From Bugula neritina (Eukaryota; Animalia; Bryozoa), in assembly GCA_964035545.1 (NCBI GenBank), contig OZ037765.1, forward strand, positions 35,426,080 to 35,490,079: 64,000 nucleotides of DNA. Direction: 5' to 3'. A program made the position numbers and the translations under genes. Below are positions 37,649-64,000 of the stretch, piece by piece (the first letter of the stretch is position 1; each line of letters begins with the position of its first letter). A model generated the notes under the pieces. The model was not told the DNA's origin and ran no database searches. It saw only the letters and a list, made by a program, of their open reading frames with translations.

Positions 37649-40418
37649 CTAAATTCCTAACAATGCCTTTGCTTCCGCAGCCTCGGCGCGTAACGTGTCA
37701 CTGGCATACTTTTGTAGCAATTCCATTTTCTTGCGTCTAACAATGGCCTCCTCTATGTCCTGTTGGGAGGGTACGGGCACGTGCGAGATGAACTGTTTGG
37801 GGCCGTCTGCTGTCTCCAGGACTTTGTTAGTTTCACCGTCTGAGTCATCTGACAGTCTGCTGCCATTAGCCTCAGTTCCATAGATATCCTCTTCCCCGTC
37901 ATCTGCAGTCTCTCCGCCTCCTCTACTTCTTCCCTTTCTCCACTCCTCAATCATTCTCTGCTGCACCTGAGAAATGTTAGCAGATGACTGACCAAGCACA
38001 GGTGTAACTGAACTATTGCTGCCTTAAGGTGTGACATAACAAACCACCCACCTCCTTCTCCACCTCCCTCTCCAGGGGAACCAAGATGCCGTCGTCTTCA
38101 TCTCGGTAGCCGTAGTAGTCAGCATCTATGTCCTTCATCAGCTCTGCTCTTGTCTTACGAGGTGCTGCCGCTGGCTCCTGTACCACATATGAGTCAATCT
38201 CAGACAACCATTCATGATACACCATGATACACTTACCATTATACCAGATATACTTACTACTATACCAGATACACTTACTACTGTACCAGATACACTTACT
38301 ACTATACCAGATACACTTACTACTATACCAGATATACTTACTACTATACCAGATATACTTACTACTATACCAGATACACTTACTACTATACCAGATATAC
38401 TTACTACTATACCAGATATACTTACTACTATACCAGATACACTTACTACTATACCACTTACTACTATACCAGATATACTTACTACTATACCAGATATACT
38501 TACTACTATACCAGATATACTTACTACTATACCATATATACTTACTACTATACCAGATATACTTACTACCGTACCAGATAGACTTAGTACTATACCAGAT
38601 AACAACAACCTATCACTTACCAACTCAAACAGCTCCTTCACTCCAGGCAGGTCCTTGGCAGCTCCGAAATACTTGTATCCTCTGTTTCCTGGAACCTCCT
38701 TCCCTTCGTGGTCCAACATCTTTGGGCCTATCTTTCTGTAGTCTGGACCTCCCAGCTCTTTTATCTGCCAACAAAGGTAAATACATGTGTGCCACAGCAT
38801 GCTGGAGAGAGAGATCAGTGCCTGCAGACAACTTATCTCACTGACTAATATACACAACTCACCCGGTCTTCCCAATGCCCCTTCTCCCGAAGAAGCTTGT
38901 TAATTTCATCGTTGAGATCACGCAATTTGAACTCGCCCAGTCCGGCATTCTGAATTTGAGAAACCTTTTTTGAAACTTCTCCTAGAATTTGGCGCCTCCA
39001 TTTCTCAGCTTTTCTCAGATCATCACACTCTGTGGCCAAGTATGGGCGACGCTCTTTATCTTCTGAAATCAGCCAATCATATATCATAACACAATCAGCC
39101 AATCATATATCATAACACAATCAGCCAATCAAATATCATAACACGGTCAGCCATCATAACGATGTCAGCCATCAAAACTATTGCCAAAACTTGTGAGAAG
39201 CTCTTCTTACAAGAGAGAGGGCATGAGTCCTACCTGTTTGTTACTGAATGGCTCAAAGTAGCACATGCCACCCATTTATTTTACTCGGACACTAAAATTA
39301 ACCTAATTTCAAACAATGAGTTTTTGTTTGAGTGACAAGTTTCATATTTTGCTGGCTGGGTTAAATGTCATGTGTATGGTTTGAAACAAAGATACTTATA
39401 AAAAGAAATAACTAATCACAAATCACAAAATGCTAACTGCCATCGATATTTGTTTTTCAACCAAAAATTATACCTATTAGCAAATAATAAATCGGGAAAT
39501 TGTGAATTTCTTGCAAACTTGTAAATTTATTTTTTCAAATCAGTCAAGCAGTCATTCCAAAAATAGCTGTAAACAACTGTAGCCTATTGTGATAAAACCA
39601 ATTTTGCAAACTGTTTTAATGCAACTCAACCATCTATCATGACAATATTATCCAAATCTGAAAACAATTTAAGTTCATATATCCATTATGAAATAAATTT
39701 CAATGATTACAAAGACAGTCGGTTTCTTAGTACAATTGTTGAACACTCGTATTCAAAAACTTTTAGAATATAGGTATAGATACAGGTCTACACACTTTTA
39801 TATCATATCTAACTCTTTTTGTAAGCATGCATAAACTTTACAACAGAAACTACACATAGGATACCATAAAAATACTCCACTCGAACTTCACTACTAAGCA
39901 TTGCACTTCACAGTCAGATTTGGTATTACATTATACAACTATAATAATTGCCTTGAAAATAAAAAATATTGTTTAAAGTTCGCCAATATTAATTATCATA
40001 AAGATTATACTAATCCATCAAACGTAATAAAACAATTTAAGACCATATCAATCAATATGAATACGAATTCCCCTTATTATATATTTATATTGAACAGTAA
40101 TTAATAGTAACTCACAACGTCAACTGACACTGTGAGTAAGTAACACGGATGGTTACTGATCACCGTCAAGTGTAAACATTTCATAAATATAATACTTATA
40201 GTTACATTTCCTATTGTTCGCAGCTACACTTGCAGTTATTGCAACATCCTACAGGGCTAAAACAGACTCAGTTTTACTTTTAGTTTTAGTTTAATTTATA
40301 TTTAATTTCATTTTATAAGACTAAATACTTCTCTAGTAACTACCGTACCTCCTTTTTCTTCGAATGCTGCTCTCCAACGTGCAAGTGCCGTCATAGCTTT
40401 TTCTGTATTTCTTGCCAT
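37649..40418 (-). CDS. ISY1: pre-mRNA splicing factor ISY1 (NTC/Prp19-associated), 5 exons
   Basis: Exons 40418-40349 (MARNTEKAMTALARWR), 39062-38863 (RRPYLATECDDLRKAEKWRRQILGEVSKKVSQIQNAGLGEFKLRDLNDEINKLLREKGHWE), 38764-38621 (ELGGPDY...GKEVPGNRGYKYFGAAKDLPGVKELFE), 38177-38052 (DADYYGYRDEDDGILVPLE), 37966-37649 (HVPVPSQQDIEEAIVRRKKMELLQKYAS). All junctions are GT-AG and in phase. Confidence 0.95.
38225..38600. repeat. 21-bp minisatellite in ISY1 intron 3, carrying GTAAGT on the - strand
   Basis: ccagatatacttactactata units. Confidence 0.95.
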
Positions 40419-43257: not shown

Positions 43258-44378
43258 ATGCCTCGAATACAATGGAAAAGAAACCGGATCGTGCTGATAT
43301 GCGTCAGCGTTGCTTGTTTTCTTTTACTCAGTTTGAAATTGCTAGGTTATTCCCTCCTCCATCAGAGAGTTTCTGAAGATAGACTTAGGACTAGTAAAGT
43401 ATCTTTTACGATCCCGCCCCTTCCTACTCAGCATAAACTGGCCGTAATAGTTCCGTTTAGAGACAGGTTTGAGGAACTGTTAGAGTTTGTTCCCCATATG
43501 CACAGCTTCTTGAAGAATGCCTCCATAGCGCATAAGATATACGTAATCAACCAGGTGGACACTCACAGGTTCAACAGAGCCTCCCTAATCAATGTGGGGT
43601 ATAAGCTGAGTGTACTAGAGTGCGATTACCTGGCCATGCATGATGTAGACTTGTTACCTCTCAACCCTCTCCTAGACTACGGCTTCCCTGCAGACCACGT
43701 GTTCCACGTCGCCTCTCCCTACCTCCACCCTATTTATCACTACAAGAAGTTTGTTGGAGGGATTTTACTGCTAACTCACGCTCACTTTCAGCGACTTAAT
43801 GGATTGTCTAATAGGTACGTGTGCATTACTCTGTGTACATTACTATGTGTACATTACTCTGTGTGTACATTACTCTCTGTACATTACTATATATATACAT
43901 TACTCTCTGTACATTACTCTGTATACATTACTCTGTGTACATTACTCTCTGTACATTACTCTGTATACATTACTCTGTATACATTACTCTCTGTACATTA
44001 CTCTCTGTACATTACTCTCTGTACATTACTCTGTCTTCATTCAGGTACTGGGGATGGGGTAGAGAAGATGACGAGTTCTATGTACGTATGAAGGAAGCAG
44101 ACCTGACTATTCTCCGCCCAGACCTTGAGAAGGTCACCACTGGCTATAAAACATTTCGCCACATTCACGACCGGAAACGTCGCCCCAGGGACAACAAACG
44201 TTACGGCAATCAGGGACCCTCCGGGTCCCACAGGGACAGAAAAACTGGATTAGCTGATGTAGATTTTGATTTAATAAGCAAACACAGGATTGTTATTGAG
44301 AATTCGCCAGCAACTATATACAATGTTGAGTTACAATGTGATGTTACAGATACCCCTTGGTGTGATGCTCCTACCTAG
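43258..44378 (+). CDS. B4GALT7: beta-1,4-galactosyltransferase 7 (xylosylprotein galactosyltransferase, GT7), 2 coding exons
   Basis: Exons 43258-43814 and 44045-44378. N-terminal type II TM segment, HKLAVIVPFRDRFEELLEFVPHM, FNRASLINVG, MHDVDLLP (DxD motif), GLSNR|YWGWGREDDEFY, and C-terminal TPWC. AATAAA at 44723. Confidence 0.95.
43824..44034. repeat. 14-16-bp minisatellite filling the B4GALT7 intron
   Basis: acattactctctgt units. Confidence 0.9.
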
Positions 44379-46727
44379 CTGTTCTACTACCTTTATACTC
44401 TCTCATTATATACTATCTGTAAGGTGCTCTGTCTATTATTTAGTCATCTATTTGTAAAGGAAATTCACATCCTGATTTCAGTACGAGTCTTTTAGAATTG
44501 TTTACAACGACCAACTATTTTATATGATCCCTATTGGTAGTGTTCACACAGGAGTCTAATTTACACATTTCCTGTGCAGGGTGTTGGGGTGTAGTTCTCT
44601 CATCTTTATTCTAATAACTTATTCTGTTAGAAACACTACACTAGTATTTCATATGCTGACAATCAAAGTAAACTTAACAGTGACTTAACTTTTGTAACCA
44701 ACATGTTTGTACAACTCATTCTAATAAACGTGTAACATTCCCTGCTTCTGTTTCCATGTGAATAGAAACAGCTGTTTGACTGTTTGACCTGGATATGATA
44801 TGCCAGTAACACTCACTGTTCTACATGGTGATGTATTTACTTACCAACTTGCAAACATGACTGAGTACTTGATGGTAGTTTGCTCAGAGTCTAGACCAGC
44901 TCACATCCAGTTGAATTACTTGTTAGTGTCAGTACTTGAACTTTGAATCCTCCTGCTGCAATTACTTGCATGATTTGACTTGACCTTTTCAACTATATAA
45001 TAGACTTGAATGGAGTTACATAAGAATTTAACTGGTTGGATTTACTGAGTATAATGATATATTGCAGCAAGAGAGCGTGTTCTGTTAGGACTCCGAGTTT
45101 ACTGGTTAGCAATGCCTATGACTCACTCTCAGCTATATAACTACAGTCATTGTTTATGTTATGCACACCTAGATAACCTGCTGACCTAACCCTTGCAGCT
45201 GACACTTATTTGTTGATGTAATAAGAGCGTAAATGACTCATCTTTTGTTATGCTGACTTAGATTATACCTTCAAAGTCTGCTGGCAAAAGGTTGGGATTT
45301 ATTGTGATGGCTCTAATAAAAACATATGTTGTCTGAAAACACGGAGATCAGAATTCAAGATGAAATGTTTTGTAGTAAAATATTATAATATTTTATATGC
45401 TGTGTGGTTTATAGGAAACACATATAAACAAAACCTCCAGTTTTTAACTTGATATACATTGTTTAGATACTTCCTCTACATTGTTCATGAATCGTGTGGA
45501 ACTGACACTATTCATATAGTACAATAAACCATGAATAAATATGTAAACAAATATCACGCAATAACATATTACTCTACAAGCCATATTAATAAGTAATAAA
45601 ACTGCAGGCAAATACCAAAATAATATAATATATACAATAATTGTAACTAATTCCTTTGTGCTGTAGATATTTCAGAATACTATATTTGTTATCGTTTTTC
45701 TATACTGGCATATAGGTATCCTGGTTGTATATGTTATACATTATTTTTAGTGTGGTTGTATTTTTTATACAGTATGTTTATAGTGAGAATGTATATGTTA
45801 CACATTATATACATTAAATCCTGGTATATATATAACAGCACCTTCAGTTTACCTTGCAGTTGGTGTATATAATGAACCATTTGAAATCTTCTCATCTATT
45901 CCAGGCTATGATTTATTTTGTACAATTATATTATTACCATCATTCTGGTGTTATTCTTTTATTAAAGTGTAACCTAATGCGAACTCTCCTTTCTTTAGCT
46001 AGAGGAGGCTAGGAAACCTACAAAGGGGTACTCTGATGATAAATATTAACTAAAACTAGGTAAATTCTTTAGCAAAGGTATAATAGACACACAATTAACA
46101 TATATGGTAATTAGTGTGTATTATAGAATCTTTTTATATCCTAAATATTTCCATGACTATACTCAGTTGGGTTGTCTCACCTTGTGTATTTTCATAGTGC
46201 TGAAACAATGGTATGTATAAGTATCAAAATCTTATATCTGGTACTTATGACCTTTCAGAATAGCTAGCATTATTTTACTTGATGACACTTGAATTTTAGC
46301 ACTTTTATAAATACTGGTTAAAAATGTATAACATGTTTTACCAAAATCAACGTTTTAATTAGAGAACTAGAAAATTGAAATGTGTAGCCTAGTGTTTAAA
46401 GGAGAAAAAAGCAAAATGCAAAATATTATGAATATTATTATAAGATAATAAAACAGAAGATGTAACGACATAATTCCATAGGATGTAAAAATAAAGTTTA
46501 AATTTAAAAACACTCTGTAGAATATAAATGTTTATATGAAGACTCGTTAAAGTTAAAAGAGAAATGATGCAATATGAATGTATCTTTTTGTTGGTTGGTA
46601 GAATAAATGTTATTCAAACTCAAAGTCCAAAGTTGCAGGCGTCATTTTGTTGGTATTAGGAGCAACATACTTCATATTGGATGAAGTTTTCTAATTTCCA
46701 ATCTGAAACTCAGAGTCAGACATACTG

Positions 46728-49557
46728 TTATATTATAGAACATGAGTTCCATATTCTATATAACATGGTAGAGCCAACGGACTCTGGTTCTTTCTCTCCT
46801 TCTATCTGAGTAGCTCCTTGATGGATATCTGTACCAGAAACTCCGTTGTATCCAGGAAACAGGTAGAGTTTCCTTTCATGAGAGAGAGTGTCACTAGCAT
46901 CTACCAGCTGTCCAGTTAGAATGTTCTTCGTTCTCTTACAATATTTGCTGATTCTGTGTTGAACCTGTAATAATATTTTCTAACAGTATCTAGTATATAG
47001 AATATGTAACATGTTTTAACAATATTATATAATATATAGAATATGTAACATAATCTAACAGTATCTAGTATATAGAATATGTAACATACTCTAACAGTAT
47101 CTAGTATATAGAATATGTAACATATTCTAACAGCATCTAGTATATAGAATATGTAACATGTTTTAACAATATTATATAATATATAGAATATGTAACATAA
47201 TCTAACAGCATCTAGTATATAGAATATGTAACATGTTTTAACAATATTATATAATATATAGAATATGTAACATAATCTAACAGCATCTAGTATATAGAAT
47301 ATGTAACATACTCTAACAGTATCTAGTATATAGAATATGTAACATAATCTAACAGTATATAGTATATAGAATATGTAACATAATCTAACAGTATATAGTA
47401 TATAGAATATGTAACATAATCTAACAGTATATAGTATATATAATATGTAACATACTCTAACAGTATCTAGTATATAGAATATGTAACATACTCTAACAGT
47501 ATCTAGTATATAGAATATGTAACATAATCTAACAGTATCTAGTATATAGAATATGTAACATAATCTAACAGTATCTAGTATATAGAATATGTAACATACT
47601 CTAACAGCATCTAATATATAGAATATGTAACATAATCTAACAGTATATAGTATATAGAATATGTAACATAATCTAACAGCATCTAGTATATAGAATATGT
47701 AACATAATCTAACAGTATATAGTATATAGAATATGTAACATAATCTAACAGCATCTAGTATATAGAATATGTAACATGTTCTAACAATAGCTTCACAATA
47801 TCCCCAGCCTGTAAACTTTCATGCAGTTATAGCTTAGCCGATTAAAATTTCAATCATATACATGCTATTGGTTCACAGGAATATCAGTAACAAATACCAA
47901 AATGACTAACAACTGAAATATTAAAAACTAAAACTTAATCTCATATAATATTTCTTAAGCTTTTAGCTTTCAATTATTTTCCAAGTATCTGTTATGTTTT
48001 GATGAAACTTTTTGTATCATGTAACACATTTACCGCTTTGTAGATCTCATGCATATCACGATGACAGGCATGTCTGTAGAGAGTTCTGACCAGACATCTG
48101 ACTAGTAGAGAACCGTACACAGGATGTCTTATAGACACATAGGCTATAACAAAGTGAAAACTCTAATATACTATATATGGTACATCATCAGTACTCTCAG
48201 ATATGTACATATGTTCTTATGCTTTACCACCTAATTTATACAACTGATAGTATGCTATAGGCATATATATGAACCCACTGTAAATATTGCAACAACAAAA
48301 AATACTACTGAGGTAGTCACAAAGTGAATAGCTTGATCGATTTTTTTTACAAATTTACACTGTGTCACAAAACTCTATAGTTCCAAGGTAAACCAACATT
48401 AAAATCACATACAAAAGACTACTTTTGAAGAACAGTTAAGATACTCACAATCAAAGCTGGCTTTTATAACAAACAGGTTTTCACAGTGAAGTGTCTCAAT
48501 TCCATCTCCTTTATAATATCCACCAGAGAAGTACTTTGGAGGAGTGAATACTTCTGGTTGAGTCACACTCTCATCTTCATCACCAAATTCATTGTCTCCT
48601 CCTGTCTCTACATCCTTGTGTCCTTTCTTACCCAAATCTTTTCTACCTGTTTACCATGGAATATTGAAGCAGTTATTGTTAAGCAGCAGTTGAATAGTAC
48701 CAGTAAAAGTGCACTGTCTGTGACTGTATTTCAAATAAATACAACATATCAACTCAATAGAAACTCACCACCACTACAAGCTTGGATAACAACCAGTTTA
48801 GGTTTATCAGCAACCACTGGGTTCTGAGGAACAGATAGTACGTCATACAGGTCTGTCAGTTTCACCAACTTTCCATCTGAACCATAGACATGACCCTCAA
48901 CTCCATGAGATCCAATAAACAGGAAGAACATCCCATAGTCTGCATTCTTCACATCATTCACTTCTTGCTTTACTGTTTCCCACATCTCCTGTGGTTACAT
49001 TCAGTATAATGTGAAAACTTTGTCAGCAGCCAAGTGAAGAAAATAAATATCATTTAATGAATCATTCTGTTTGTTGCAAATTAGTCTGCATATTAAGAGA
49101 ATTGAGTTTTTCATAATATTTAGGACTTTTCTGATTTGAAGTATCCCTCATCAAATTCTTTCTTTTCCAGTAATTTGTTGTGAAATAACCACTGTATGCG
49201 TAAAATCTAAAGATGAGATTTTGCTAATTGAAGTTCATTTTGCATGTTTCCTACCAAGATATCATGATTGAGAAGGTTCAAATGAGACATTTTAATGTAA
49301 CCATGGTATGTGTAAAATAACAAAGTATACTATAATAAATATTTAGCTATCGTTTTTTTCATTTATAAAACACAATGTGTCAAAACCTGAGCAGAGAGGT
49401 CCTTTTTGGTTACAACATCAAACTGAAAGGAGTTCAACAAATGTTCTAAATTTTTAACATCTACATCAGAGCCCTGTCTATAATAATCTGGATGAGCTTT
49501 CACTTCTTTGTTGTTGATTAAAACAGCTCTGCCTCTTCTCCTAGTCATAGGAAACAC
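46728..49557 (-). CDS. caspase (peptidase C14) domain exons, p20 and p10
   Basis: MTRRRGRAVLINN..RQGSDVDVKNL; FIGSHG (catalytic His); KPKLVVIQACSG (catalytic Cys); p10 SYVSIRHPVYGSLLV; RKLYLFPG. Confidence 0.9.
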
Positions 49558-49942
49558 CTGGATGTTGTAGATATAAGTAAATTAAAACTCAATACACAAA
49601 ATCGCAAAGCTGACAAAACGTATGCAGACGGTTGATTCAAAATACTATTCCTTGTAGTCTTTTCAAAATTTTGCTCACTTTATCAGAGTTCAAGAACAAG
49701 TCTGTAGTTTTCTGTTTAGATGTAGGAACAGGTGTCTGGTGAAGAAAAAGTTTCTTTCTGTCAGCATCAGCTTTGGGCACCAGATAGTCATCATCATCAG
49801 ACAAATCACTTTCTTCATGTTCCTCACTGGGCTGACTTGATGTAGTCGGTGTAGTTGTAAATAGCCCTAAAATAACTAATGACTCTACTACATGTATCTA
49901 ATAACTGTTGTGTTTACATCGAGGTTATATTATAATTTAGAG

Positions 49943-50028
<86 letters not shown>

Positions 50029-53000
50029 TCCGGGCATGCGTGGTGTTACGCTAGTTGGTTAAACTCGTGCTTGAGAATTTTAGTTCGATTTAAATAAATT
50101 ATATATTTGATTTGATTGCAAATTATATTTGATTGCTCATTCAAATCTTACAATATAACAATAACTAATTTGTTTTTATATTTTAAATAGCAAATAATTT
50201 GGTGATACAAGTTTTTGCAGTTTGAAAAGTTGAGTAAATACCTGATTTATTTTCACCTCTCTTTATAGCATTGTTTTCTTCTTTCAATTTGGTAACATTT
50301 GCTTTCAATTCCTTTATTTCAGACTCCTTCAAATGAACACCTGAATTCAATCAAAACAATTATACAATAAAGTGTATATTTGAAACATGCTGGAGCAAAA
50401 ATTTGTGATAAGCTCAAAAATTTGATAGTCTTTAATAATTGCTTAGCTAAATATTTAAGAAATTGAAGCATTTAAAAGACCTAATAAACCGGTAAAAACA
50501 ACTCTATTTGCAGCAATCTGACTTTGATCTCAATTTCATATTATTCTGATAACCAAATTTTGCTATTAAACTATTCCAACACTAACTTACATGGGTGAAC
50601 AAAAAGACTCCGAATCTTATCTCCCCCACAGCGAACTGTCACCATCTTCCTCTGGAACGCCTGATATGGTTTCTCAGTTTGAAAGTCATGACACCATTTG
50701 GGAGTTACCTGAACTTTAGGATTAGATTCACCTTTCAATATGCAGTGTGTACAACTAGACTTGTGAACCATTCTGCTGGCAGGCCAGGAACTTCGAATCT
50801 CCTTGGAGATTTTCCTGGTTATACTGACCATGTGCTCCCAGCAATCTGTGATTTTCTCTACTGCTCCGGACACTGTAACATCTGCCTTCCTTGAGAGGCC
50901 ATCATGGACAAGGCGCACCGAGATATCATCAGGAGATATTTTTACACCGTTTTTTCTAACAGTTAAAGAACTTGTTTCATCTGGGAACATATTTAGCACA
51001 ACAACACTCATCTGTTGGTAGACATATTGTGGAATTGAGAGACCTTTGAACATGATCTCAGCATGGAGAATGATGTCTTGATCAGTGGTAAAAGTGTTCT
51101 CTATGTAATCAGGGGAGTGGAAGGGTACAATAAAACAGCTCTTTGATTCCAGATCAACTGGTCCGTAAAGAATGCTGAATTTCTGCAGCAAAGTGACAGC
51201 AAGTTGATATGCATCTTCATCAATGAATGCTGTCTCAGCTTTGATTAAATATTCAAGAAGTTGGTTCCCCATGATTCCTGCCGACAAGAAAAATTCCATG
51301 AAATTATCAAACTGTTCTTTCTCAAGAAAAGCTCCGTTAGTCAGTAAAAGTGGTTCAAAATTTGCTTGCCGAGTCTGCCAGACTTTTTCATCGTGATTAA
51401 ACAAGACTGTGAGTAGTTTAGTAACTTCCTCAATCTTGTGAAAAATAATCTGGTTCAACTCTTCAATCTCCTTGTACCACAAGACTTTACCACAATCATG
51501 CATGTAGGTGAGGATTGTGGTGAGCTGATCAGGTGTGATACTTCCATCTACTTGCTGCACTGTGCGAAGTATCTCATCAAATGTACTGAATGCTGTTTGT
51601 AATCCTAAGACTTTCTCATTCACATCTTCCCACAGCTTTGGCAGCACTTTCACAAAATTTTGAGCTGAATTAAAAATGGCAGTTTTCATGACTTCGTATG
51701 TTTGATAATTATCTTCTTTTCCAACTGAGTAGATATCTTCTTGCAAGAACAGCTCTCTGTGTTGATAGAAGTGCTCTATCTTTGCTATGCTTTGGTCAAG
51801 TTGTTTCTCTTCTCTCATGATTTCATCTTTCAGTAGATCAGCTGTGCTGGTGAAAGCAGTAGTCAGCTTTGTGAAATTCTCCTCATCAAACTTGTCTTTG
51901 TGAGTAAACACAAGTTTTGGTGGTCCAATGCCAGGGTTTGCCACGTATAAATGAGCCAGCCAATCAAAAGCCAGTCTTCTCACAGCCTCTCTGTCTCCCT
52001 TTTCTCGCGCCAGCTGATCATACTGCTCCATGTTCACCACTACTATCTGGATGCAGTTCTGTTTAAGTGTTAACTGGTAAGTCATGTGGTACACTGGTTG
52101 TCCTCCCATGTCAATTAGTCTCAGAACCGTTTTATTTACTTTCAACTCTTCAACTTTAAAGACTTTAGTTGTTTCATCAACAACAGCCTCAGGTTCACGA
52201 TTTGTCAGCACTCTCTTTCTCTCTTCACTCTGCAATGTTCTGATGAGACTTGTCTTCCCTGCCATTGTGTTACCAATCACTGCAATGGTGACTAGTGGAA
52301 GACTTTTACCTTCACCTTTAGCAAGATCTCTGTAGTACTGTCTGATTGCTGGCAATCCTCTGGTGCAGACTTCATAAGGGGGAGTGGTTAGAAACGTGCA
52401 TCCATCAGCCTTTATCGTTTGCAACTCCTTCAAGTTGCAGACTGCCTCGGAAATTGAAGCTAACTTGTTTTTCTGAATATCCAAAGACTGCAGATTTTCT
52501 AAGTGTTTCAAACTGCAAGTTGGATAAAAAAAAGCACATAAATAGAATTAGATTCTTCCAACTGCAGCAGTTTCTAACAAATTAATCTGATCTCTATTCC
52601 TGATTAAATCTGCTGTTTTGTTGCAGATATTTTGGCCCTTCTAATATATTCTCACTTGAAGTAAGTTTACATATTAGTGCTTTGTTTAATTTTGTTCTTT
52701 CTAATAAACACTATTTTATAATACATTTCATTTATTTTTCAGCCGTGAAACAGGTGAAAACAGTATTTCGGTTTGCCAATGATTTTAACTGCATTTTTAT
52801 AAGTCACCATAAAGTTTAAATATTAACATACAATCATAAATATTGAGAGCCTACAAATGCATATTGGATTTGATGGATGTCAAAGCTGATATGGGAAATA
52901 TTTGTTTATTGCGCAATTGATGGGCTTAGCCTAGGGCCACACGGTGCGTATTTCCGCATGCAAAAACTGAAATCACAAGTAGCAAAGGTGCATGTCCACC

Positions 53001-56000
53001 GTAGCGTCAGTGATGCGTGATAAATAAAGCTTCTATTTTTAAATCGCACTCGCTTTCAATAAAACGAAATTTACTGCAATGTAGCACTAAAATAAAGAAA
53101 TTGGGCTCTCTGAATAACTAGCAGCCAATTAGGTGACGACGACAGAGACGATTCGCACTTGTCGCTCAGCATTCTGAACAACAAGTGCGAATGTTTTCTC
53201 AACGCGCACAGTGGACACCTTTGCTACTTGTGATTTCAATTTTCGCATGCGAAAATACGCACAGTGTGGCCCTAGGCTTATTCTAAGTTGTATATTATTC
53301 TTTAATGTAGCAATTAGTGCAGGTAACAGCATAATGACAATGAGTTTGCCTCTAGAGAAGAATGCAGATGCTACAACTATAACTGCTTCTGCACCAAGAA
53401 TGACTAGTCCCAATGAAAAGAACCAAGACTTCCACAGTCCACTTATTTCTAGAAAAAAAAACAACAGGCAACTCAATACAAGAGTAGGCTAAAGGAATAA
53501 ATGGGAAAGTGTTATTGGTCTACATGAGACTGGGGAGTGTAACTTTGAAAGAAAGCTGTTGCTAGCAACATGTGCTATAAGTACAGATTTGTATTCACCA
53601 GCTAGACGCCCTGCTAAATCTACGTCAACATAGTCAAATCCTACATTAGAGTTATAGCATACAAGCTTCTGTATCCATGGAATTAATCTATCTACAAAGG
53701 GTTTGCAGTAACATACAGAGTTAAAAAGGCTGCCTTGTTGCTGTTATACCACAAAAGGAGCTAGAAAGACTTTAAAATGAACTCAATGATCATAAAATTT
53801 AGATTTGAAATTGAACGGCACTCATTGCAAAAGTTGCGCAACTATATTTAGATGCATGAAATCATGAATTTTTTACTCAAACTGGATTTCGTACAAGCTT
53901 TACCAGTGAAATATTATAGTGTTAAACATCGCTGATTGACTGAGTTTTACTTGGTCTCTTCTTGACTCAGCAATGCTAAAAGAAAGATCTCCTATTTTGA
54001 CTATTTGAGTTTCCTTGACATATTGCATGCATTTAAAGAATTTTATAGCTTCATACATTGATACAAAGTTGTGTCACCAGCTACTTTATAGTTTTCATGA
54101 TACACTGAGGCTATATAGTGTCTTGCAGTACTTCATGGAGAGGCACAGAAAGCAAGTTAATTGGCAGCTATAAGCCATGCAGTAGTGTTCAACTAAACAC
54201 TGTGAGTATTTCTAAGTTCCAGCTTGCATGAAGGGCAAGTAATTGGTATTGGAATGCAAATTAAAAACTGATTTGGCAATAAGAAGTTATTACAACACAA
54301 CCTGGAAGAATACAATTTCTTGGAATGCAATTTCTTGGTAGAACCATTGTTTCAGTTTGCATCAAAACTCAACATTCGATTTAGTATTCAGTTTGTTTAA
54401 TATAGTTTCTCTTATCACACACACTTGTGAGGCTTTTTGCAATAAGCAACACACTTGTGAACAAATTAATTTTAATAAACTTTATGCAACTTTTTTCTCC
54501 TATGAAAGAGGTTGTATTCTGCTGACCATTGCAATCTCAGTCTAGTTTATGAAAGCTGATTTTAAATGTTTTTGAACTTTTCAAGAAATTTTTTCAACAA
54601 ACTAACTTTAAGATATTATTCTGTTAAAAATTTTTGATTCGAATGGAACGGAGAGAAAATTAGTCTTTCATATAGTGCATGTGTGGGGTGTTGGCCGAAA
54701 AATTAAAAATTTTATACATTTTTGAAACACAGTATTCAGCATATATTATAAAACTTTGGTTTTACTATTGGAACCTTAGTTTGAGTAACATAATATTCTC
54801 TACAACATGTACAAAACTTTTTGAAATACAAACTTAAGCACTATTTACAGCAAGTGCAGCAGCTCCATGGTTTTAATCGAATAATATAAAAAAATTGAAT
54901 TAAAGTAGTAATAGAGTTTCGTAACACAAATTTAAAAGCAAATTCTACAGAAAATACAGAACTATAAATGAGCAAGTATACCTGGAACACTAAATAATTA
55001 GCAATTCATATAAATTTGCTTTCACTAACCTCTCAGGTAGAGTTGGTAGTTTACAGTTACTAATATCCAACTGCTTTAGAGATGTCATTGATGTGACTAC
55101 ATCAGGTAATCCTTCACTGAAGTTATTCCATGATATATCAAGAGTCTCCAGATTCTTCAGATCAGACATGCTATAATAAACATATACTAGTTGAGACATA
55201 ATATATTCTAATATATGATTTAACATAATACAATAAAATATAATATACAATATAAAATTTGATCCAACATATTATATTAAAATATATTACAATACAATAT
55301 AACACAATATACCAAATATAAAATTTGATATAATATATTATATTAAAATTTAATATATTTTATCATAATATACTGTAATATATATAGTAAAACTATACTA
55401 TAGTTGAGATAGGCTGTATTATATTTTAATATAGAATAACATATATTATGATATACAATGATGTGACAGAGTATACAATATAAAATATTGGAGTACATAT
55501 TGTAAGATAATATAGCGCATTATAATAATTTAGTGTAATATAATATAATATAATACAATATACCACTTATAATAGCACTTTCAATTCCATGGAATGTTTG
55601 TAACAAGTAAAACTATATACAAACATATTATCTTATCTGTGATTATAATTGGATGTCTGATCAAAATTATTATAGAAATCAATATTTTTCTTGAAGGGAA
55701 CTGAAATTTCTAGATGAGCATTTTATATATAAAGTTGCTTTTACTAACCACTCAGGAAGAGTTGATAGTTTACACTCAATAATATTCAACTCTCTTAAAG
55801 ATGTCACCGGTGTGAATACATCAGGTAATCCTTTACTGAAGTTATTCCATGATATATTAAGAGTCTCCAGATTCTTCAGATTAGACAAGCTATAGTAAAC
55901 ATATACTAGTTGAGATATAAGTTATATTTTAATATGATATAACATAATACATACAATAAAATAGATAATAATACAATATAAAATTTGACAGTAATATAAT

Positions 56001-59000
56001 ATTATATTGAAATATAATATAATATAGCGTGTAAAGTTATCACTGAGCATAATTAATTCAAGCAGTAAAAGTAACATAGTGTAATGAATACGTAATAGTT
56101 AATCGGGCATTCAGCGTTGCGTTTAGCATAACGTTTCACTCAAATAGATTATCGCAGATTCCTGCCTGCAACGGCTGCTAGTTGTAAATTCATTAATTAT
56201 ATAACAGCACGCTCTCGCTCATTGGCTGTGGCTTTATGCTTTGGCAGCCCGGATGTTTCAGTGCAGGCGTTGACCCTACAGTTAGTAGAATAGCATCAGC
56301 TAGCAATGCAAGTTCATCACATCAATAACAATCAATTTTAAATGATGTAATTAATAAAATATAGATGAATTTAAATTGGAATTAACTTAAAGAGGCACAG
56401 GTTAGTTTTGTCTTTCAGTATTTGTAATAATTTGAAGCTTTCTTTAAGTATTTTTATCTATTTCAACTATAAGAATAACTATTTGGTTTATTAAACATGT
56501 TTATAAGTTTGACAATTTTTAGAATGCCAGTGTGGTCAGTGCATGATAGAATTCATGGCTATGTGTTTATTTCACAATAGATTTCTCATAAAATTACAAA
56601 TTCTTAAGGCAGGCTCTCCAGTGATTGATTAGTTTGTCACAAGATAGTATTCTAATTGGCAGTTAAAGCCTTATTTTTATACTTACAGCATTTTACTGCA
56701 GCTACTAATTAAAGTCAACATTGAATATAAGTTTTAATCTCTGTCTATATGAGCTATACATTCATTCTTACTAATTGTCTCAACATTTGTCTAATTGCAG
56801 TTATCATTTAATGTCATTTTTATTATAGTTTGATATTTTTTAGTAGACCTGTAATACCGTTTCATAGAAACAAACTCACTCTAGCTAGCCACTAAAAGAA
56901 GGCAAGAGGTGATTAAATTAATATCTGTAAATATGTTTGAATACTTTACAATTTCATAAATAATTTTCTGTTTGTTTCATTTTAAAAACCTGTTATATAA
57001 TTTCATTTATATTAATAACCTACTTTTACAAAACTTTTCTTACGGCAGTTGGAATAAATAAAAATAAAGTTACTAACACCAACACCAGTACAACTCATCT
57101 ATAGTTAGTGGCGACGCTACATAGCGTAATGTAATATAATACAAAATTATATATTATAATACAACATACTATAGTCAACATGTATATAATAGTGAAGATA
57201 TCCTATAATATTATATTATAATAGAGTATAATATATAATCATAATATAACGTAATGCAGTATAGTATATTAACATAAAATAGCATAATGCAGGGTAATAT
57301 AATATTATGCAATACACTAGGTAAAAAAGCACTCAAAATTCTAAGAAATATGTTTGTAACAAGTAAAACTATATACAAACATACTTTCTTTGCGATTATA
57401 ATTGGATGTCTGATCAAAATTATAGAAATCAATATTTTTTTGAAAAAAAACTGAAAATACTAAATTGACATTTCCTATATAAAGTTAATTTTACTAACCT
57501 CTCAGGTAGAGTTGATAGTTTACAGTTACTAATATCCAACTTCCTTAGAGATGTCATTGATGTGAATACATCAGGTATTCCTTCACTGAAGTTATTCCTT
57601 GACATATCAAGAGTCTCCAGATTCTTCAGATTAGACATGCTATAGTAAACGTACATAATACAGTATATTATACTAGCTGAGATATGATATATGCTAATAT
57701 AAACTAACACAAAACGATGAAATATAATATAGTACAATATAAAATTTGATTTAATATATTGTCAACTTGTGCTATTCACTAATTATATGGATATTTAAAA
57801 CTGAATGCTAATAGCCCGCCAATGTACAGTATTGAGTATATAGACAAAGTTTATTTAGTACGAATAATACAAAAGTGAAATAAAATACATAAGTGAGAAG
57901 AATTACATAACTTAACAATAACGATGCATGCAACTTAACTATTCAAATGCTACTCTCTAACTGCATTCTGCTGATCCAAGCTGCTAATAATTGTATGATC
58001 CTTTGCATTATCCTGATTGGTCTATCCTATCCAATACCATGGGAGATGGCAGAGTAGCGTAGGCTGGTATTAGACTAGGGAGTAGCTTAGCGTATCGTAG
58101 ATGATTGCAGCGCTAAAGTATTCGAGTGAGGTACAGGAGTTGTCACTTCTGATGCACCATGATTCACCGCACCCCCCTATCTATCATAAGGCATGGCTGC
58201 TGATTAACCAACATATCAGAAGTTTAAAAAATATGACAATAATGAACAACACAAAAATATGAGTCATTTTACTTAGTTTAGTACAGACTGGAAATCTCCA
58301 GTTTTTAGCTATTTTTCACACTCTAGCTGCTAATGACCATGGGTTTTTGCCCAAAACTAGTAAAACATCAACAAATACACCTTGACTACAGTCGCATGCT
58401 CTCGCAAGGGTGTCTTATAGTCACGCCTCAACTCTTGCAACTAAGCTTGTGTTTTTTTGACAGTGAGTCTGGAATAGGCCCTCACTGCCTCAAAGATGCT
58501 GTTAACGTTTGGGTCAATACCTTATTTTTTTTACCGTTCCCGTTAAACTAATCTGTAGCTGTATCAGAGCTCCACATCTTCTTCTCCACAAAAATCGAGA
58601 TGTTGTAAATGATATCTGTCCATAGGCAGCGCTGCGCCACCTATAACATCTTGTACAGCTACGAGTGCCTTTTCCTCAGGCTCTAGGCGAGGCACCTCCT
58701 CCTTGTCGCTAGCCATGCTCCTCTACTCCTTGGTAAGGGGCATCGATCTCAATTAGATCCCACTGCTGCTATCACTGTGGTGAATTTATGGAGATAAATC
58801 ACCTTGTGTGGGTTATTGAGAATCTAAGAGCATGTAGCGTTATGTGTGCAAGTGTGTGTGTCAGAGTTGTCAGTGATACTAATTTGTGTGCGTGCAATAA
58901 TCCAATACTAACTATAATGGCGATAATAATCCAAGCAAGAAAAGCTACATAATATAAGATTTACATTGGGTAAAAAGAAAAAAATACAATCTACAAGTAG

Positions 59001-61677
59001 CTACTAAACTAAGCCGGCTCTTCTAGAACACAACATGGGGCTGGTACAGGGCTAGTGTTTTATACCTGCGCAGCCTCCTCTGATGTAAAGTTAGTATAAA
59101 CAGCTATGTGATCGTTAGCCAATCAAACCGTTGGGGCATAATGAATGTGTAAACAATAGTGTGAATTGTCACTGATGTTGGGTGTTGTGATGTTTAGCCT
59201 CGGTTAAGCGCGTAGCAAATGAATGCACTGAAAACTTTTACAATATTTTCTCCTTTTTTTGGAAAACTGTGGTTCCATCGTGGTCACAGAGTTAATTAAT
59301 TCCTCTTAATTTGAGACCATGAGCTTCCTTTAAGCCTAAATAGAATGCTTTAATGCCCCTTCTGTCTGCTGCCATTTGAAGTTCTATTGCTTTTTCTTGC
59401 CACCATCGAGGTTTTATTTTTTGGCATACCTCTGAAGACTGCTTTGTGATTTTCAGTAGGTTTTCCTTTTCAATCTGGTATGACACTGGATGAAAGCTTG
59501 TCTTGCCTTGTTTCTATTCTCAATCAACTGTCGTAGGAATTCATCATGTTCATTTAACCAACATTAATTTTTTTGTCTTTGTTTACTAAGCACTTCACTA
59601 GCTGTTGAAAACACTGTTTTCTTGAAAAATTTATCTATGTCATCATTATTTGCATCCGAACACTTTATATTCTCATTCAATTCCTTTTCAAGTTGTTTTC
59701 TTTTTTTCGACTGTTCAGCATGCCGCAGTGTTTAGTTTAATTAATGGCTTAGATCCAGTTTTCTTGTGATGTAATTTTCTTTTAATCTTTATTTTTGATT
59801 TTAGCATTATATGATCTGTGCCACAATATACTCTTCTTACAGGTCAAGTATCTAAAACCACACTCAAATTTTTATGGGTCATAGTAGGAGCATATATTTG
59901 CTAATAAAAGTCGCGTAAAATAATTTTTGGAGAGAAAGCCTAAATGTCATGATTCAGTCATTTACAGGAGTTGGTTCTTCATCCAAGGTTGGCAGCAATC
60001 TCATTTCTGAATGCAAATCTCACCCTTGCTTCTCTTCTTTCATCAGCTGACTTTCCACTTCAGTAGAAAGTATAGCCATATTCTATTAAGGTATCACCAC
60101 CTGGAAATCTTGTGTCACTAAGTGCGGCACAAAGCCATATGTATCCATGGCCATGGCCACAAAAGCTGTCTGTCTCTCTAGACGCTGCAATTGTGATCAA
60201 TCCATCAGTGTTTGTACATACCACTCTGCTACATATAAGAGGACATTTCTTCTCTTTTCCATTCTGTCTCCTAGCACACTTTTTGCTTACTGCTGCAGGA
60301 GTGAGAACAGATCAGCTTGAACCTTGTTATTTCGAGCAACGTCCAAGTCAGCATGAACTTGTTTTTGACGTAGCATTTTATAGAAACTGCTTACAAAAGA
60401 TTTAAGGTATAACCTATAACTGGCTTTTTCATGACCAATAGCACACACTTGGACGAAAAAGCCTAGAAATGCTGACCCCTTCCTTATCTGTTGCAGTGAC
60501 TGCATGACCAAGAAATAAGTATGCTAATCCCTGCTCTTTGGAAATGTGTCACCTCACATTGACTGGCATGGTCCACCACAGACCTAAGAATGCCCATGCA
60601 GTCCCACTCACTAGTTAGCTTGGTCATTGACCACTCGACCCATGGAACACGTTGTACCGATTTTTATGGTTATCTGGTAGCAGGCATTATACTTGACCTG
60701 ATCTGAATTACTCGATAAAAATTTCATATAAACTTGCTTTGACTAACCTCTCAGGTAGAGTTTGTAGTTTACACTCAATAATATTCAACTCTCTTAGAGA
60801 TGTCATTGATGTGAATACATCAGGTAATCTTTTACTGAACTTATTGAATGACATGTCAAGAGTCTCCAGATTCTTCAGATTAGACATGCTATATTAAACA
60901 TATACTAGTTAAGATATAATATATTCTAATATGATTCAACATTATACAGTAAAATATAATATAATACAATATCAAATTCGATATAATATATTATATTAAG
61001 ATATGATGTAACATAATACAGTAAATAATAACATACAATATAAAGTTTGATCTAATATATTATATTAAAATATATTACAATACAATATAACACAAAATAC
61101 CAAATATAAAATTTGATATAACATATTATAATAAAATATAATATATTTTGTTATAATATATTGTAATATATATAGTAAAACTATACTATAGTTGAGATAT
61201 GCTGTATTATATTTTAATATAGAATAACATATATTATGATATACAATGATGTGACAGAGTATACAATATAAAATATCAGAGTACATATTGTAAGATAATA
61301 TAGCACATTATAATTATTCAGTGTAATATAATATAATATAATACAATATACCACTTATAATAGCACTTTCAATTCCATGAAATGTTTGTAACAAGTAAAA
61401 CTATATACAAACATATTATCTTATCTGTGATTATAATTGGATGTCTGATCAAAATTATTATAGAAATCAATATTTTTCTTGAAGGGAACTGAAATTGCTG
61501 GATGAACATTTTATATATAAAGTTGCTTTCACTAACCTCTTAGGTAGAGTTGATAGTTTACACTCAAAAATATTCAACTCTCTTAAAGATGTCATTGATG
61601 TGACTACATCAGGTAATCCTTTACTGAAGTTATTCCCTGATATATTAAGAATGTCCAGATTCTTCAGATTAGACATG
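46728..61677 (-). CDS. LRR-ROC-COR-caspase fusion protein (Roco-family GTPase with C-terminal C14 caspase); 5' end not resolved
   Basis: In-frame exon chain on -: 61677-61537, 60888-60748, 57639-57499, 55889-55749, 55170-55030 (LRR cassettes); 52512-50591 (LRR+ROC+COR); 50340-50257 or 50242 (coiled coil); 49866-49679 (acidic linker); 49557-49387, 48988-48769, 48646-48449, 48143-48034, 46964-46728 (caspase, TAA). All junctions are GT-AG with compatible phases. Confidence 0.8.
46977..47787. repeat. 36-bp minisatellite in the last caspase intron
   Basis: aacagtatctagtatatagaatatgtaacataatct units. Confidence 0.95.
49944..50024. repeat. (TA)n microsatellite
   Basis: Direct reading. Confidence 0.97.
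50591..52512 (-). CDS. exon encoding terminal LRRs, ROC GTPase and COR domain
   Basis: LRR cap LTTPPYEVCTRGLPAIRQYY, P-loop GNTMAGKTS, G3 DMGGQ, G4 THKD, and COR-type LTYMHDCGKVLWY. Acceptor ttgcag at 52513 and donor gtaagt at 50590. Confidence 0.9.
52929..53277. mobile_element. PIF/Harbinger-type (Tourist-like) MITE
   Basis: About 60-bp TIRs starting GCCTAGGGCCACAC, flanked by TTA on both sides (52926-28 and 53278-80). Confidence 0.85.
55030..55170 (-). CDS. 141-bp two-LRR cassette exon 5
   Basis: MSDLKNLETLDISWNNFSEGLPDVVTSMTSLKQLDISNCKLPTLPE. Confidence 0.85.
55749..55889 (-). CDS. 141-bp two-LRR cassette exon 4
   Basis: LSNLKNLETLNISWNNFSKGLPDVFTPVTSLRELNIIECKLSTLPE. Confidence 0.85.
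56030..57121. mobile_element. probable solo LTR in the LRR exon array
   Basis: TGTA...TACA termini, 5-bp TSD TAGCG (56025-29 and 57122-26), AATAAA near the right end. It interrupts the repeated intron sequence. Confidence 0.65.
57499..57639 (-). CDS. 141-bp two-LRR cassette exon 3
   Basis: MSNLKNLETLDMSRNNFSEGIPDVFTSMTSLRKLDISNCKLSTLPE. Confidence 0.85.
58261..58368. mobile_element. fragment of the 4734-5150 MITE family
   Basis: gagtcattttacttagtttagtac...gctgctaatga...gggtttttgccca matches the MITE arm. Confidence 0.65.
59230..60420 (-). mobile_element. degenerate RTE-like LINE fragment
   Basis: Interrupted frames include WWQEKAIELQMAADRRGIKAFYLGLKEAHG and endonuclease-like DTRFPGGDTLIEYGYTFY*SGK. 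Multiple stops. Confidence 0.65.
60748..60888 (-). CDS. 141-bp two-LRR cassette exon 2 (absent from ORF track)
   Basis: MSNLKNLETLDMSFNKFSKRLPDVFTSMTSLRELNIIECKLQTLPE; same phase-2 splice sites as the other cassettes. Confidence 0.85.
61537..61677 (-). CDS. 141-bp two-LRR cassette exon 1
   Basis: ag|C ATG TCT...CCT AAG AG|gttagt; MSNLKNLDILNISGNNFSKGLPDVVTSMTSLRELNIFECKLSTLPK. Confidence 0.85.
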
Positions 61678-62017
61678 CTATATTAAACATATACTAGTTA
61701 AGACATAATATATTCTAATATATGATTTAACATAATACAATAAAATATAATATAATACAATATCAAATTCGATCTAATATATTATATTAAAATATATTAC
61801 AATACAATATAACACAAAATACCAAAAATACAATTTGATATAACATATTATATTAAAATATAATATATTTTATTATAATGTATTGTAATATATATATAAT
61901 ATAGTTGAGATATGCTATATTATAATATTTTAATATAGAATAACATATATTATGATACAATGTGACAGAGTATATTATAAAATATTAGAGTACACATTGT
62001 AAGATAATATAGCACAT

Positions 62018-62478
62018 TGTGACAGCCGATAATGGTTACTGTATCAGCTGATAATTGTTGCTGCGTCAGCACGGATGCTGTTTGGCACAGATGCCTATGT
62101 ATTGTAATTCACTTAATGAAGGGTGAAAGGATGGAGGACACAGAAGCAGGCCACAACTCTATTTTTGTCTATTGCCAACAGTATATTTTCTAAGTTAGAC
62201 TTCATTCATACTTAAACTCATATTCACACTTGTACTCATACTGTAACCTATAAACATAAAAATTACAAAAATCTTGTTAGCTGACAAAACATTTAGTTAA
62301 TGAAGTTCAAAACAAAAGATAATATAATACTTGATACTCACAATTATTTTGACAATTAGGTATAGATTGCCTGCATGCATCTTTAGCAGGAGGAAAACTG
62401 AGCTACACTGACTCATCGACCAAAAACTGAGAGTAAATAGCTATCGCGAAAGCTTTCACAAATAGCTTTCGTTACACA
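62018..62478 (+). mobile_element. possible LTR (TGTGAC...GTTACA followed by TGGT)
   Basis: Begins exactly where the LRR-array intron homology ends. It has TG..CA termini, but no partner LTR or TSD is visible. Confidence 0.3.
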
Positions 62479-63872
62479 ATGGTATTTGAAAAGCTGCCAA
62501 AAAGCCACTGCAACACCGGAGGAGCGAGTTGATTGAATTAAATTTCTAATTTAATCAAAAAATAACAATAGAACAAAATATAAAGGCAACAAAAACATAG
62601 CATTGGAATGTAACAAAACTTAACGGTAAGCAAAAATACTATTTGGCTTATCAGATATATTGCAAACCTCACTGTTAAATGTAGTGTAAAATGATTGTTT
62701 GGTTTGGCACCGAAACGAACCTAAAAGCGCACCTAGTCGACTGAGACAAGCAATGCAAGGTTCTGCACTGCATGAATCACCCGGCCTCTTTGCACCCTGT
62801 ATGAACCCCAACCCCTGAGCCAACTTTAAGTGTTTTGTATTTTACTGCAATTGTCTGCTCCTGTCGCTACATCTCCAACTTTCCCTCTGATCACTGGGCG
62901 TCACTATGATGATTTTCAACTTTCTGCTAACCCAATCCGCTAAATTGATATTGCTCTTAATTCACCACCACTCACTCGAGTTACCTTCGTAGCAATTTGA
63001 ATCTTTCCTATTTTAGCCTTGTAAAAATGTCTTGCAGTACTTGCTTGAGATTTATCATACACTGGATTTGTGGAAACTTTTTGTTGGTATGGATCTTGAG
63101 GAGTGACTTTTTTCAATTTTACTTCTGGTTCTTTCGGACAGCTTTTACACTTCCAAAAATAGGTTAAAACTTGAGCAGTATTTTCTTCACAATTCAGTAG
63201 TTTGTTGGACTCGTCTATTCCTACTGTGGAAGGAATGACAGGTTGGTTGCTGTCATCAGACTGGAGGTCATGCTCATCTGCTGAACTATCTGAAGTCTGC
63301 AGCAACAAATTTGTTGGATGCTCAGCGTCACCTTTGCTTTCCTCTTGCTTCACTTGCGAGAGACCTAACTGAGATCCAGATGGTTGGCTGGAACTTGTGC
63401 CAGACACTGACTGACTAACTTCACTACTCTGACCCAGTGTGGTATATTTAAGAGTGTTGCCATTAGCAAATCTTACGGAATCATATGGGCGCCATTATGC
63501 CGAGATTGGTATCGCGAGTTTATATAAGTTATAAAGGAAAAATTTTGCCACTTTTGTTATTTTATTTTTTTTCTATTTTATCTGTACATTTTTTTTAATT
63601 TTTTTTATTGGTAAAGTTTTTAAACACATTTTTAATGCACATAAAATTAAAAGAAAAATTAAAACTCAATCATGCACATAAATACAAAGCTATAAAGTTA
63701 AAGCTTCGCTGTGATTTTAATGTGAATATGAATTGAATAATGCTTGTAATAACCATTATACACAAAATACGTTACAGTTGCTATAAATGTAAGACTAGTT
63801 AATTGGATGCAAATAGGCACGGTAATACTACTTAATTTATGCTATTTTTGAATTTTGTATTAAATATTTGGC

Positions 63873-63983
<111 letters not shown>

Positions 63984-64000
63984 GATATTATTATATATAT

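Follow-up and report, generated by a model that had tools for sequence, protein, structure and literature searches.

The window analysed here, a stretch of 64,000 nucleotides on contig OZ037765.1 of the bryozoan Bugula neritina (assembly GCA_964035545.1, positions 35,426,080 to 35,490,079), carries on its minus strand an array of leucine-rich repeat (LRR) cassette exons directly upstream of an exon encoding a Roc GTPase and a COR domain, which is followed by caspase exons. The locus lies on chromosome 1 (C1), about 150 kb from the chromosome end. We consider it probable that the cassettes are germline-encoded tandem two-LRR modules forming the solenoid at the N-terminus of a member of a large LRR-Roc-COR-caspase family of B. 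neritina, in which units are gained, lost and exchanged, the codons of the binding face are diversified and the cassettes are spliced in series. The pattern, as read from the sequence, points to germline duplication, recombination and diversifying selection. The coordinates of the features are given in Table 1.

Each of the five cassettes in the window (c1 to c5, counted from the Roc-COR exon outwards) measures exactly 141 bp and encodes 47 residues, split codon included, which make up two LRRs; their pairwise identities range from 86.5 to 94.3%. All five hold a single open frame, with 5-8 stops in each of the other two frames, and each scores as an LRR in Pfam (LRR_1, LRR_4, LRR_8). The nhmmer matches of the cassettes (E-values of 1e-45 to 1e-47) are far beyond chance, and a 33-nt pattern with an expected number of 0 was observed 4 times. 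Every acceptor ends in atag/C and every donor reads G/gttagt (the slash marks the exon border). The first base of a cassette is the last base of a codon and its final two bases, AG, open the next one, so that all the exons are of phase 2-2, and the codon created at the junction is always serine: AGC between cassettes and AGT at the Roc-COR exon, whose acceptor is cag/T. Consequently, any join between two cassettes, or between a cassette and the exon starting at 52512, keeps both the reading frame and the LRR register. A preliminary description of this DNA had proposed five 141-bp phase 2-2 exons with a common acceptor and donor, any subset of which would splice in frame and feed the exon at 52512; the positions on the minus strand, the phases, the junction codons and the match in frame and register bear out these proposals. 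The same description had expected more cassettes upstream of the window, and a search of the adjacent DNA found a sixth, c6, at L031:2826-2969(-), equivalent to 66826-66969, 2.8 kb past the window end. It measures 144 bp, with one extra codon, and has the same splice sites as c1-c5 and phase 2-2.

The first 45 residues of the Roc-COR exon form an LRR pair in the register of the cassettes. Further along the translation, the Roc domain (PF08477) scored 31.6 bits against a Pfam cut-off of 27, with a P-loop (GNTMAGKT) and a DMGGQ motif present, and Pfam COR-A fell below its cut-off on its own (23.3 versus 35.3 bits, E 6.7e-5). The best sequence relatives of this exon in the PDB were the Roco protein of C. 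tepidum, Roco2 of M. barkeri and LRRK2. An AlphaFold2 model built with 31 homologues reached a predicted local distance difference test value (pLDDT) of 86 and a predicted template modelling score (pTM) of 0.84, and its fold matched the LRR-Roc-COR structure of C. tepidum (6hlu, E 1.7e-21), LRRK1 and LRRK2 (E 1e-15 to 1e-19) and the isolated COR domain 3dpt (E 7e-11, TM score 0.66 by target). With Roc above the cut-off and fold matches to both LRR-Roc-COR and COR, the protein belongs to the ROCO family, and the model has the predicted COR domain following Roc directly within the exon. Downstream, open reading frame (ORF) pieces including 49363-49557 and 48749-48985 exceeded the cut-off of the caspase family PF00656 (21.4 bits) with scores of 34.2 and 41.4 bits (E 2.8e-8 and 1.7e-10), and the ORF 48749-48985(-) contains SHG and QACSG motifs, so that both catalytic residues of a caspase, His and Cys, are present in the domain. 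A non-coding 36-bp tandem repeat (46979-47786, 22 copies, 89% matches) lies a short way downstream of these exons. The same repeat occupies the same place in a paralogue at 35.24 Mb of C1, with 90-95% identity, and is thus a conserved 3' feature of the gene, either untranslated region or satellite.

The introns of the array tell of the same duplications as the exons. Intron 55171-55748 is 94.3% identical over 557 bp to 60980-61536, which is part of intron 60889-61536, and 87.6% identical over 356 bp to 61678-62017, in agreement with the tandem duplication of exon plus intron that had been suggested for the locus. The basic unit spans about 720-790 bp, a 141-bp exon with an AT-rich intron of about 0.6 kb, and insertions have enlarged two of the introns in the window, c3-c2 and c4-c3, the latter to 3.1 kb; the c6-c5 intron spans 5.1 kb. 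In the c4-c3 intron the match to the unit intron is limited to 57669-57760 and the G+C content rises up to 0.385; the middle part of the c3-c2 intron consists of a repeat that shows RNA signal and a high depth in DNA. Similarity of exons and of flanks is discordant along the array: the c1 and c3 exons are 94% identical and their flanks 82% and 74%, and the c2 and c6 exons are 85% identical, yet the downstream intron is 94% identical. This discordance marks the units as recombination mosaics, of the kind that unequal crossing-over or conversion would produce.

Transposable elements accompany these introns. The c6-c5 intron holds, on the strand of the gene, retroelement ORFs at L031:1296-2534(-), 1.3-2.5 kb past the window end, namely L031:1296-2078(-), which encodes an aspartic protease of BEL/Pao type (DUF1758, E 3.9e-7), and a second, gag-like ORF. 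The element at 52928-53278 resembles a miniature inverted-repeat transposable element (MITE), with a length of 351 bp and 63-nt terminal inverted repeats that are 94% complementary. Its summed contig depth is about 1,000-4,000 times single-copy in a DNA run and very high in RNA-like runs; such extreme depth places it among the most abundant repeats of the genome. A Ty3/Gypsy-like element with reverse transcriptase and RNase H lies at L047:1584-3618(-), 8.6 kb upstream of c6, and copies with 69-74% protein identity stand beside or inside three paralogous cassette arrays, where they may supply homology for rearrangements.

The search for further cassettes and paralogues, which had been recommended, found both in number. 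Candidate places in the genome number at least 107 for the cassette, with clusters at 35.22-35.33 Mb of C1 and 4.81-5.03 Mb of C8, and 142 for the Roc-COR exon; 68 of these 142 were scored, and 65 of the 68 are free of stops. Six genes with Roc-COR sequences at least 81% identical make up the close subfamily of the window gene. Within it, the window gene has 6 cassettes and other arrays have 9 and 4 (6 if two past a Gypsy insertion are included), and the three C8 arrays hold, as lower bounds, 6, 8 and about a dozen intact cassettes. The number of cassettes thus differs among close paralogues, from about 4-6 to a dozen or more, as expected from the change in copy number that the preliminary description had invoked. 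Intact cassettes also occur as orphans, 6 of them at C1:35280612-35287795, 2 at 35321886-35323146 and 1 at 35269104, where no Roc-COR exon lies close enough to be joined to them; they may belong to genes whose introns are very long, serve as spare modules or be remains of broken genes. Cassettes were intact in 50 of the 55 copies examined, and the intact ones all have the same splice sites. With substitutions placed at random, a divergence of this size should have left only about 65% of the copies open (binomial p = 9e-6); the reading frame is thus being maintained. The cassette tree is mostly unresolved (29 of 46 inner branches open), and the cassettes of the window do not form one clade.

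The variation among cassettes is not spread evenly over the module. In the 50 intact copies the residues of the framework (L, N, C and P) hardly vary, and positions 11, 14, 33, 35, 37, 38 and 40 each show from five to eight or more different residues. Taking as the face the x positions of both LxxLxLxxN/CxL motifs, 12 in all and fixed before looking at the data, we obtained a mean entropy of 1.65 bits at these positions versus 0.47 elsewhere (Mann-Whitney p = 6e-5). The nonsynonymous divergence (dN) was 0.28-0.38 at the x positions versus 0.07-0.08 elsewhere, with an overall synonymous divergence (dS) of 0.085-0.10. Residues 9-11 and 32-34 of the terminal LRR pair, the homologue of a cassette, form beta strands in the AlphaFold2 model, which puts cassette positions 11, 33 and 35 in strands and the variable positions in, or just after, the strands of the concave face. 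This concentration of amino-acid variation on the LRR x positions agrees with the variable recognition surface proposed at the outset, and, as far as the alignments indicate, diversifying change is concentrated on concave-face residues. The locus also provides its own neutral yardstick, the duplicated block in which c5, its intron and c4 correspond to c2, its intron and c1. Between the two copies of this block there are 29 differences in 282 exonic bases and 32 in 557 intronic ones (Fisher p = 0.024), and of the 24 codons affected, 22 encode a different amino acid.

To follow the cassettes into RNA, four runs were compared, as short Logan contigs, with 51900-57899: X8 and X7 (by label, metagenomic RNA-Seq of a symbiont metagenome), X1 (unlabelled) and X10 (DNA). 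X8, X7 and X1 cover c1, c2 and c3 with zero depth over the unit introns, and X10 covers every bin. The three former runs thus behave as RNA; among the runs recorded as RNA, none holds the gene well. Their strongest joints connect 57641 to 55033 or 55035 with 1-3 bridging letters, at depths of about 2000 in X8, 470 in X7 and 42 in X1. On the strand of the gene this is the end of a cassette joined to the start of a cassette at the predicted donor and acceptor, and no joint of this type was listed for the DNA run X10. In a 516-nt X1 contig the match stops exactly at the c3 acceptor, 57639, and the 451 further upstream letters do not match the intron. These cassette-to-cassette joints imply that cassettes are spliced in series, which excludes mutual exclusion of the Dscam type. 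The 57641 to 55033 joint runs backwards relative to genomic order and the contigs have mismatches of about 3%; they are collapsed over paralogues and silent on isoforms at the locus. RNA coverage of the Roc-COR exon is weak and patchy and does not reach its 5' end. Short RNA-like contigs are 95-99% identical to 51900-52312, and the closest paralogue checked at the nucleotide level is about 88% identical, which suggests that the window gene or its allele is weakly transcribed.

The DNA run X10 has a joint of its own, 55058 to 55782, at about half the single-copy depth, which connects c1-like and c2-like sequence in register. A c1/c2 fusion allele created by unequal crossing-over was rejected as its source: the four bridging letters, with 25 nt on each side, match neither exon and fall in the hypervariable codons 37-38. 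No copy of the joint was present in the 0.3 Mb examined, and it probably comes from another, unseen paralogue, or else from an allele.

A combination of cassettes by alternative splicing, invoked in the preliminary description, with different subsets skipped in different cells or conditions, would be compatible with the germline mechanism and might add to it. Any subset keeps frame and LRR register, the long transposon-laden introns of 3.1 and 5.1 kb between some cassettes could favour skipping, and LRR-ROCO genes of Ectocarpus with the same exon logic give up to nine splice variants (PMC11378527). The splice sites of the cassettes, on the other hand, are all equally strong and canonical, with no sign of regulated weak sites, and the joints in RNA are all of the adjacent cassette-to-cassette type, from collapsed contigs; no skipping joint was seen at the locus, where short collapsed contigs are unable to resolve isoforms either way. 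We therefore rate combinatorial splicing as rather unlikely. The broader proposal that inclusion is also varied by regulated exon skipping or by somatic recombination between units, such that cells, zooids or colonies express different LRR arms, we hold to be decidedly unlikely.

The preliminary description had also drawn an analogy with the variable lymphocyte receptors (VLRs) of lampreys. In lampreys and hagfish, the VLR modules have no splice sites and flank a germline gene that is incomplete, into which they are copied somatically with the help of a cytidine deaminase. Applied to B. neritina, the cassettes would be donor modules copied into the expressed gene in somatic cells. The resemblance is general: in both cases the diversity of an LRR binding surface comes from many similar, clustered LRR modules, here with mosaic similarity among them. 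The mechanism is where the analogy fails. Donors devoid of splice sites around an incomplete germline gene with a non-coding spacer are absent from the locus; the modules are ordinary exons, each with a canonical acceptor and donor, all lying in the orientation of the gene, inside it and directly upstream of the Roc-COR exon. RNA shows ordinary splicing at the cassette sites, and the X10 DNA contigs agree with the germline exon-intron junctions. Somatic assembly of this kind is thus exceedingly improbable. Arthropod Dscam1 offers another comparison, given that tandem exons of equal length encode a variable recognition domain there too. Dscam exons are mutually exclusive, one per cluster being used, whereas the joints in X8, X7 and X1, which are family-wide rather than specific to the locus, show several cassettes included in series instead of one exon per transcript.

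Several observations weigh against the reading of the array as a functional, diversifying receptor arm. Off the face, dN/dS is about 1.1-1.3 within the gene, which fits relaxed constraint as well as selection, and dS is also raised at the face codons, so that the local ratio there is just 1.35-2.0. A permutation test of the pairwise homoplasy index (PHI) type inside the 141-bp exon gave no distance-dependent recombination signal (p = 0.93, 0.65 and 0.10). No locus-specific transcript was recovered, the RNA contigs of the cassettes being collapsed over paralogues as described above, and the junction of c1 to the exon at 52512 was not seen in the four runs over 51900-57899. The 5' end of the gene was not found either: tblastx and blastn comparisons of the regions upstream of four arrays returned only the Ty3/Gypsy element and intron homology, so this copy of the gene could be incomplete. 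Finally, ligand sensing, GTPase switching and caspase activation are all inferred by analogy.

Some of these points would also be expected if the array were real and the copy a decaying or incomplete paralogue, the non-functional by-product of a family with fast birth and death. The missing 5' exon, the dN/dS near 1 off the binding face and the weak, patchy RNA cover of the Roc-COR exon fit such a copy, as do the BEL/Pao, Gypsy and MITE-like insertions in the introns and the existence of relic cassettes and of orphan arrays with no Roc-COR exon nearby. The reading frame is nevertheless open in all six cassettes, in the 646 codons of the Roc-COR exon and in the exons for the caspase, the P-loop, DxxG, SHG and QACSG motifs and all the splice sites are intact, and RNA-like contigs come closer in identity to this Roc-COR exon than does the closest paralogue checked. 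We thus regard decay as very unlikely for this copy. One cassette does have the look of a relic. A seventh copy at L048:2184-2324(-), 22 kb past the window end, has its donor changed to attagt, and 1.1 kb downstream of it lies a 59-residue fragment of the LRR pair of a Roc exon (L048:917-1090(-)) with 68% identity; together they look like what is left of another, neighbouring member of the family.

Returning to germline-encoded modules spliced in series, the gene could work as follows. Units of a 141-bp exon with about 0.6 kb of intron would arise by unequal crossing-over or segmental duplication. With phase 2-2 borders and a common LRR start and end, their gain, loss or exchange would never break the frame or the solenoid, so that the length and content of arrays could drift fast between paralogues. 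After duplication, the codons for the x positions of LxxLxLxxN/CxL, on the concave, ligand-facing strand, would diversify faster than neutral DNA, and in the transcript the cassettes would be spliced serially onto the Roc-COR exon. The variable LRR arm may then sense a ligand, be it microbial, viral or allogeneic, the Roc-COR GTPase may act as a conformational or dimerisation switch, as in the C. tepidum Roco protein and LRRK2, and the C-terminal caspase, with its intact His/Cys dyad, would be the effector, activated by induced proximity.

The closest published parallel to this gene is found in brown algae, in agreement with the preliminary description. The LRR-ROCO genes of Ectocarpus and Saccharina contain shuffled 72-bp phase-2 LRR exons (Zambounis et al., 2012, PMC3341825; Teng et al., 2024, PMC11378527). 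As in B. neritina, an LRR-Roc-COR protein has an LRR arm made of symmetric phase-2 exons of equal length, the number and order of exons differ between recent paralogues, selected sites lie on the concave face (positively selected in the algae) and the proteins have been proposed as immune receptors. The differences are also clear. The gene described here belongs to an animal, a bryozoan; each of its units spans 141 bp with two LRRs, against 72 bp with one LRR in the algae; exon and intron were duplicated together; a caspase, of which the algal papers make no mention, stands at the C-terminus as the effector; and splice isoforms are documented in Ectocarpus. The likeness is one of design, and common descent of the exon structure is unlikely.

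The domain order has its counterpart in prokaryotes. Conflict proteins of the type LRR-AP-GTPase(Roc)-COR have variable C-terminal effectors that include caspases (Kaur et al., 2021, PMC8195603), and they share with the window gene fast-evolving N-terminal LRRs followed by Roc-COR and then by an effector at the C-terminus, caspase being among the bacterial ones. The C. tepidum Roco protein (structures 6hlu, 3dpu and 8r4b) is the best match of the Roc-COR exon in both sequence and fold. Bacterial genes, however, are intronless and hence have no exon cassettes, and sequence identity in the structural alignment is just about 13-14%. LRRK1, LRRK2 and DAPK1 have the Roc-COR tandem too, with preceding LRRs in the LRRKs, but their effector is a kinase instead of a caspase and they are conserved single-copy genes, not an expanded, fast-evolving family with cassette exons. 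The nearest mention of anything similar in animals concerns molluscan TIR-Roc-COR proteins (PMC9334734). The literature searched in full text contained no animal Roco-caspase, no cassette-exon LRR-ROCO genes in animals and nothing relevant on bryozoan immune receptors.

Table 1. Positions of the cassette exons, introns and domain-coding exons within the window.
Feature	Position	Strand	Remarks
LRR cassette exon c1	55030-55170	minus	141 bp, two LRRs; nearest cassette to the Roc-COR exon; covered by RNA-like contigs
LRR cassette exon c2	55749-55889	minus	covered in X8, X7 and X1; flanking AT-rich intron uncovered
LRR cassette exon c3	57499-57639	minus	RNA-like contigs end exactly at the 5' border, 57639
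LRR cassette exon c4	60748-60888	minus	open frame, splice sites, nhmmer match
LRR cassette exon c5	61537-61677	minus	open frame, atag/C and G/gttagt; nhmmer E 8e-45
Intron c1 to Roc-COR exon	52513-55029	minus	contains MITE-like repeat 52928-53278
Intron c2-c1	55171-55748	minus	duplicated along with exons
Intron c3-c2	55890-57498	minus	unit intron plus insertion of about 1.1 kb (about 56000-57100); ends homologous to 55171-55748
Intron c4-c3	57640-60747	minus	unit intron plus insertion of about 2.9 kb (about 57750-60680)
Intron c5-c4	60889-61536	minus	duplicate of 55171-55748
Start of intron c6-c5	61678-62017	minus	homologous to the other unit introns; the rest is transposon debris
Roc-COR exon (terminal LRR pair, Roc GTPase, COR)	50571-52512	minus	acceptor cag/T at 52513/52512; ORF 50571-52511, 646 codons
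Caspase exons	47992-49557	minus	PF00656; ORF pieces 49363-49557, 48749-48985, 48405-48635 and 47992-48138

Other parts of the window were also surveyed. The ORF 62940-63407(-) has no significant domain, and no tie between it and the gene was established; a scan of 46000-64000 with Rfam gave no match. A tandem repeat that looks coding (38138-38875, with runs of SGIVVSI when the minus strand is translated and of TTIPDIL from the plus strand) lies between exons of an ISY1-like splicing-factor gene at 37649-39102(-). A gene resembling B4GALT7, a xylosylprotein galactosyltransferase, occupies 43258-44378(+); its best named relative, with 66% identity, is from the bryozoan Watersipora subatra, and a JGI metagenome protein reaches 98% identity.

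In the literature searched in full text, brown algae are the only organisms with a description of ROCO LRR arms built from cassettes, and bacteria the only ones with a description of LRR-Roc-COR-caspase chains; both designs meet here in an animal, in a family of at least 68 mostly intact genes whose binding-face codons change faster than neighbouring introns. The exon architecture makes the evolution of a binding surface by gain, loss and exchange of units readable from genomes, and the co-duplicated introns give this locus a clean neutral standard of its own for that process. Should these proteins be receptors, bryozoans would possess a single-chain intracellular sensor, switch and executioner in the role that NLRs fill elsewhere. 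Bryozoans are colonial and face both pathogens and fusion with non-kin. If the inclusion of cassettes were varied as well, this would be an animal recognition system, serving immunity or allorecognition, that prepares for ligands in advance through combinations of modules and works without immunoglobulins, VLRs or NLRs.

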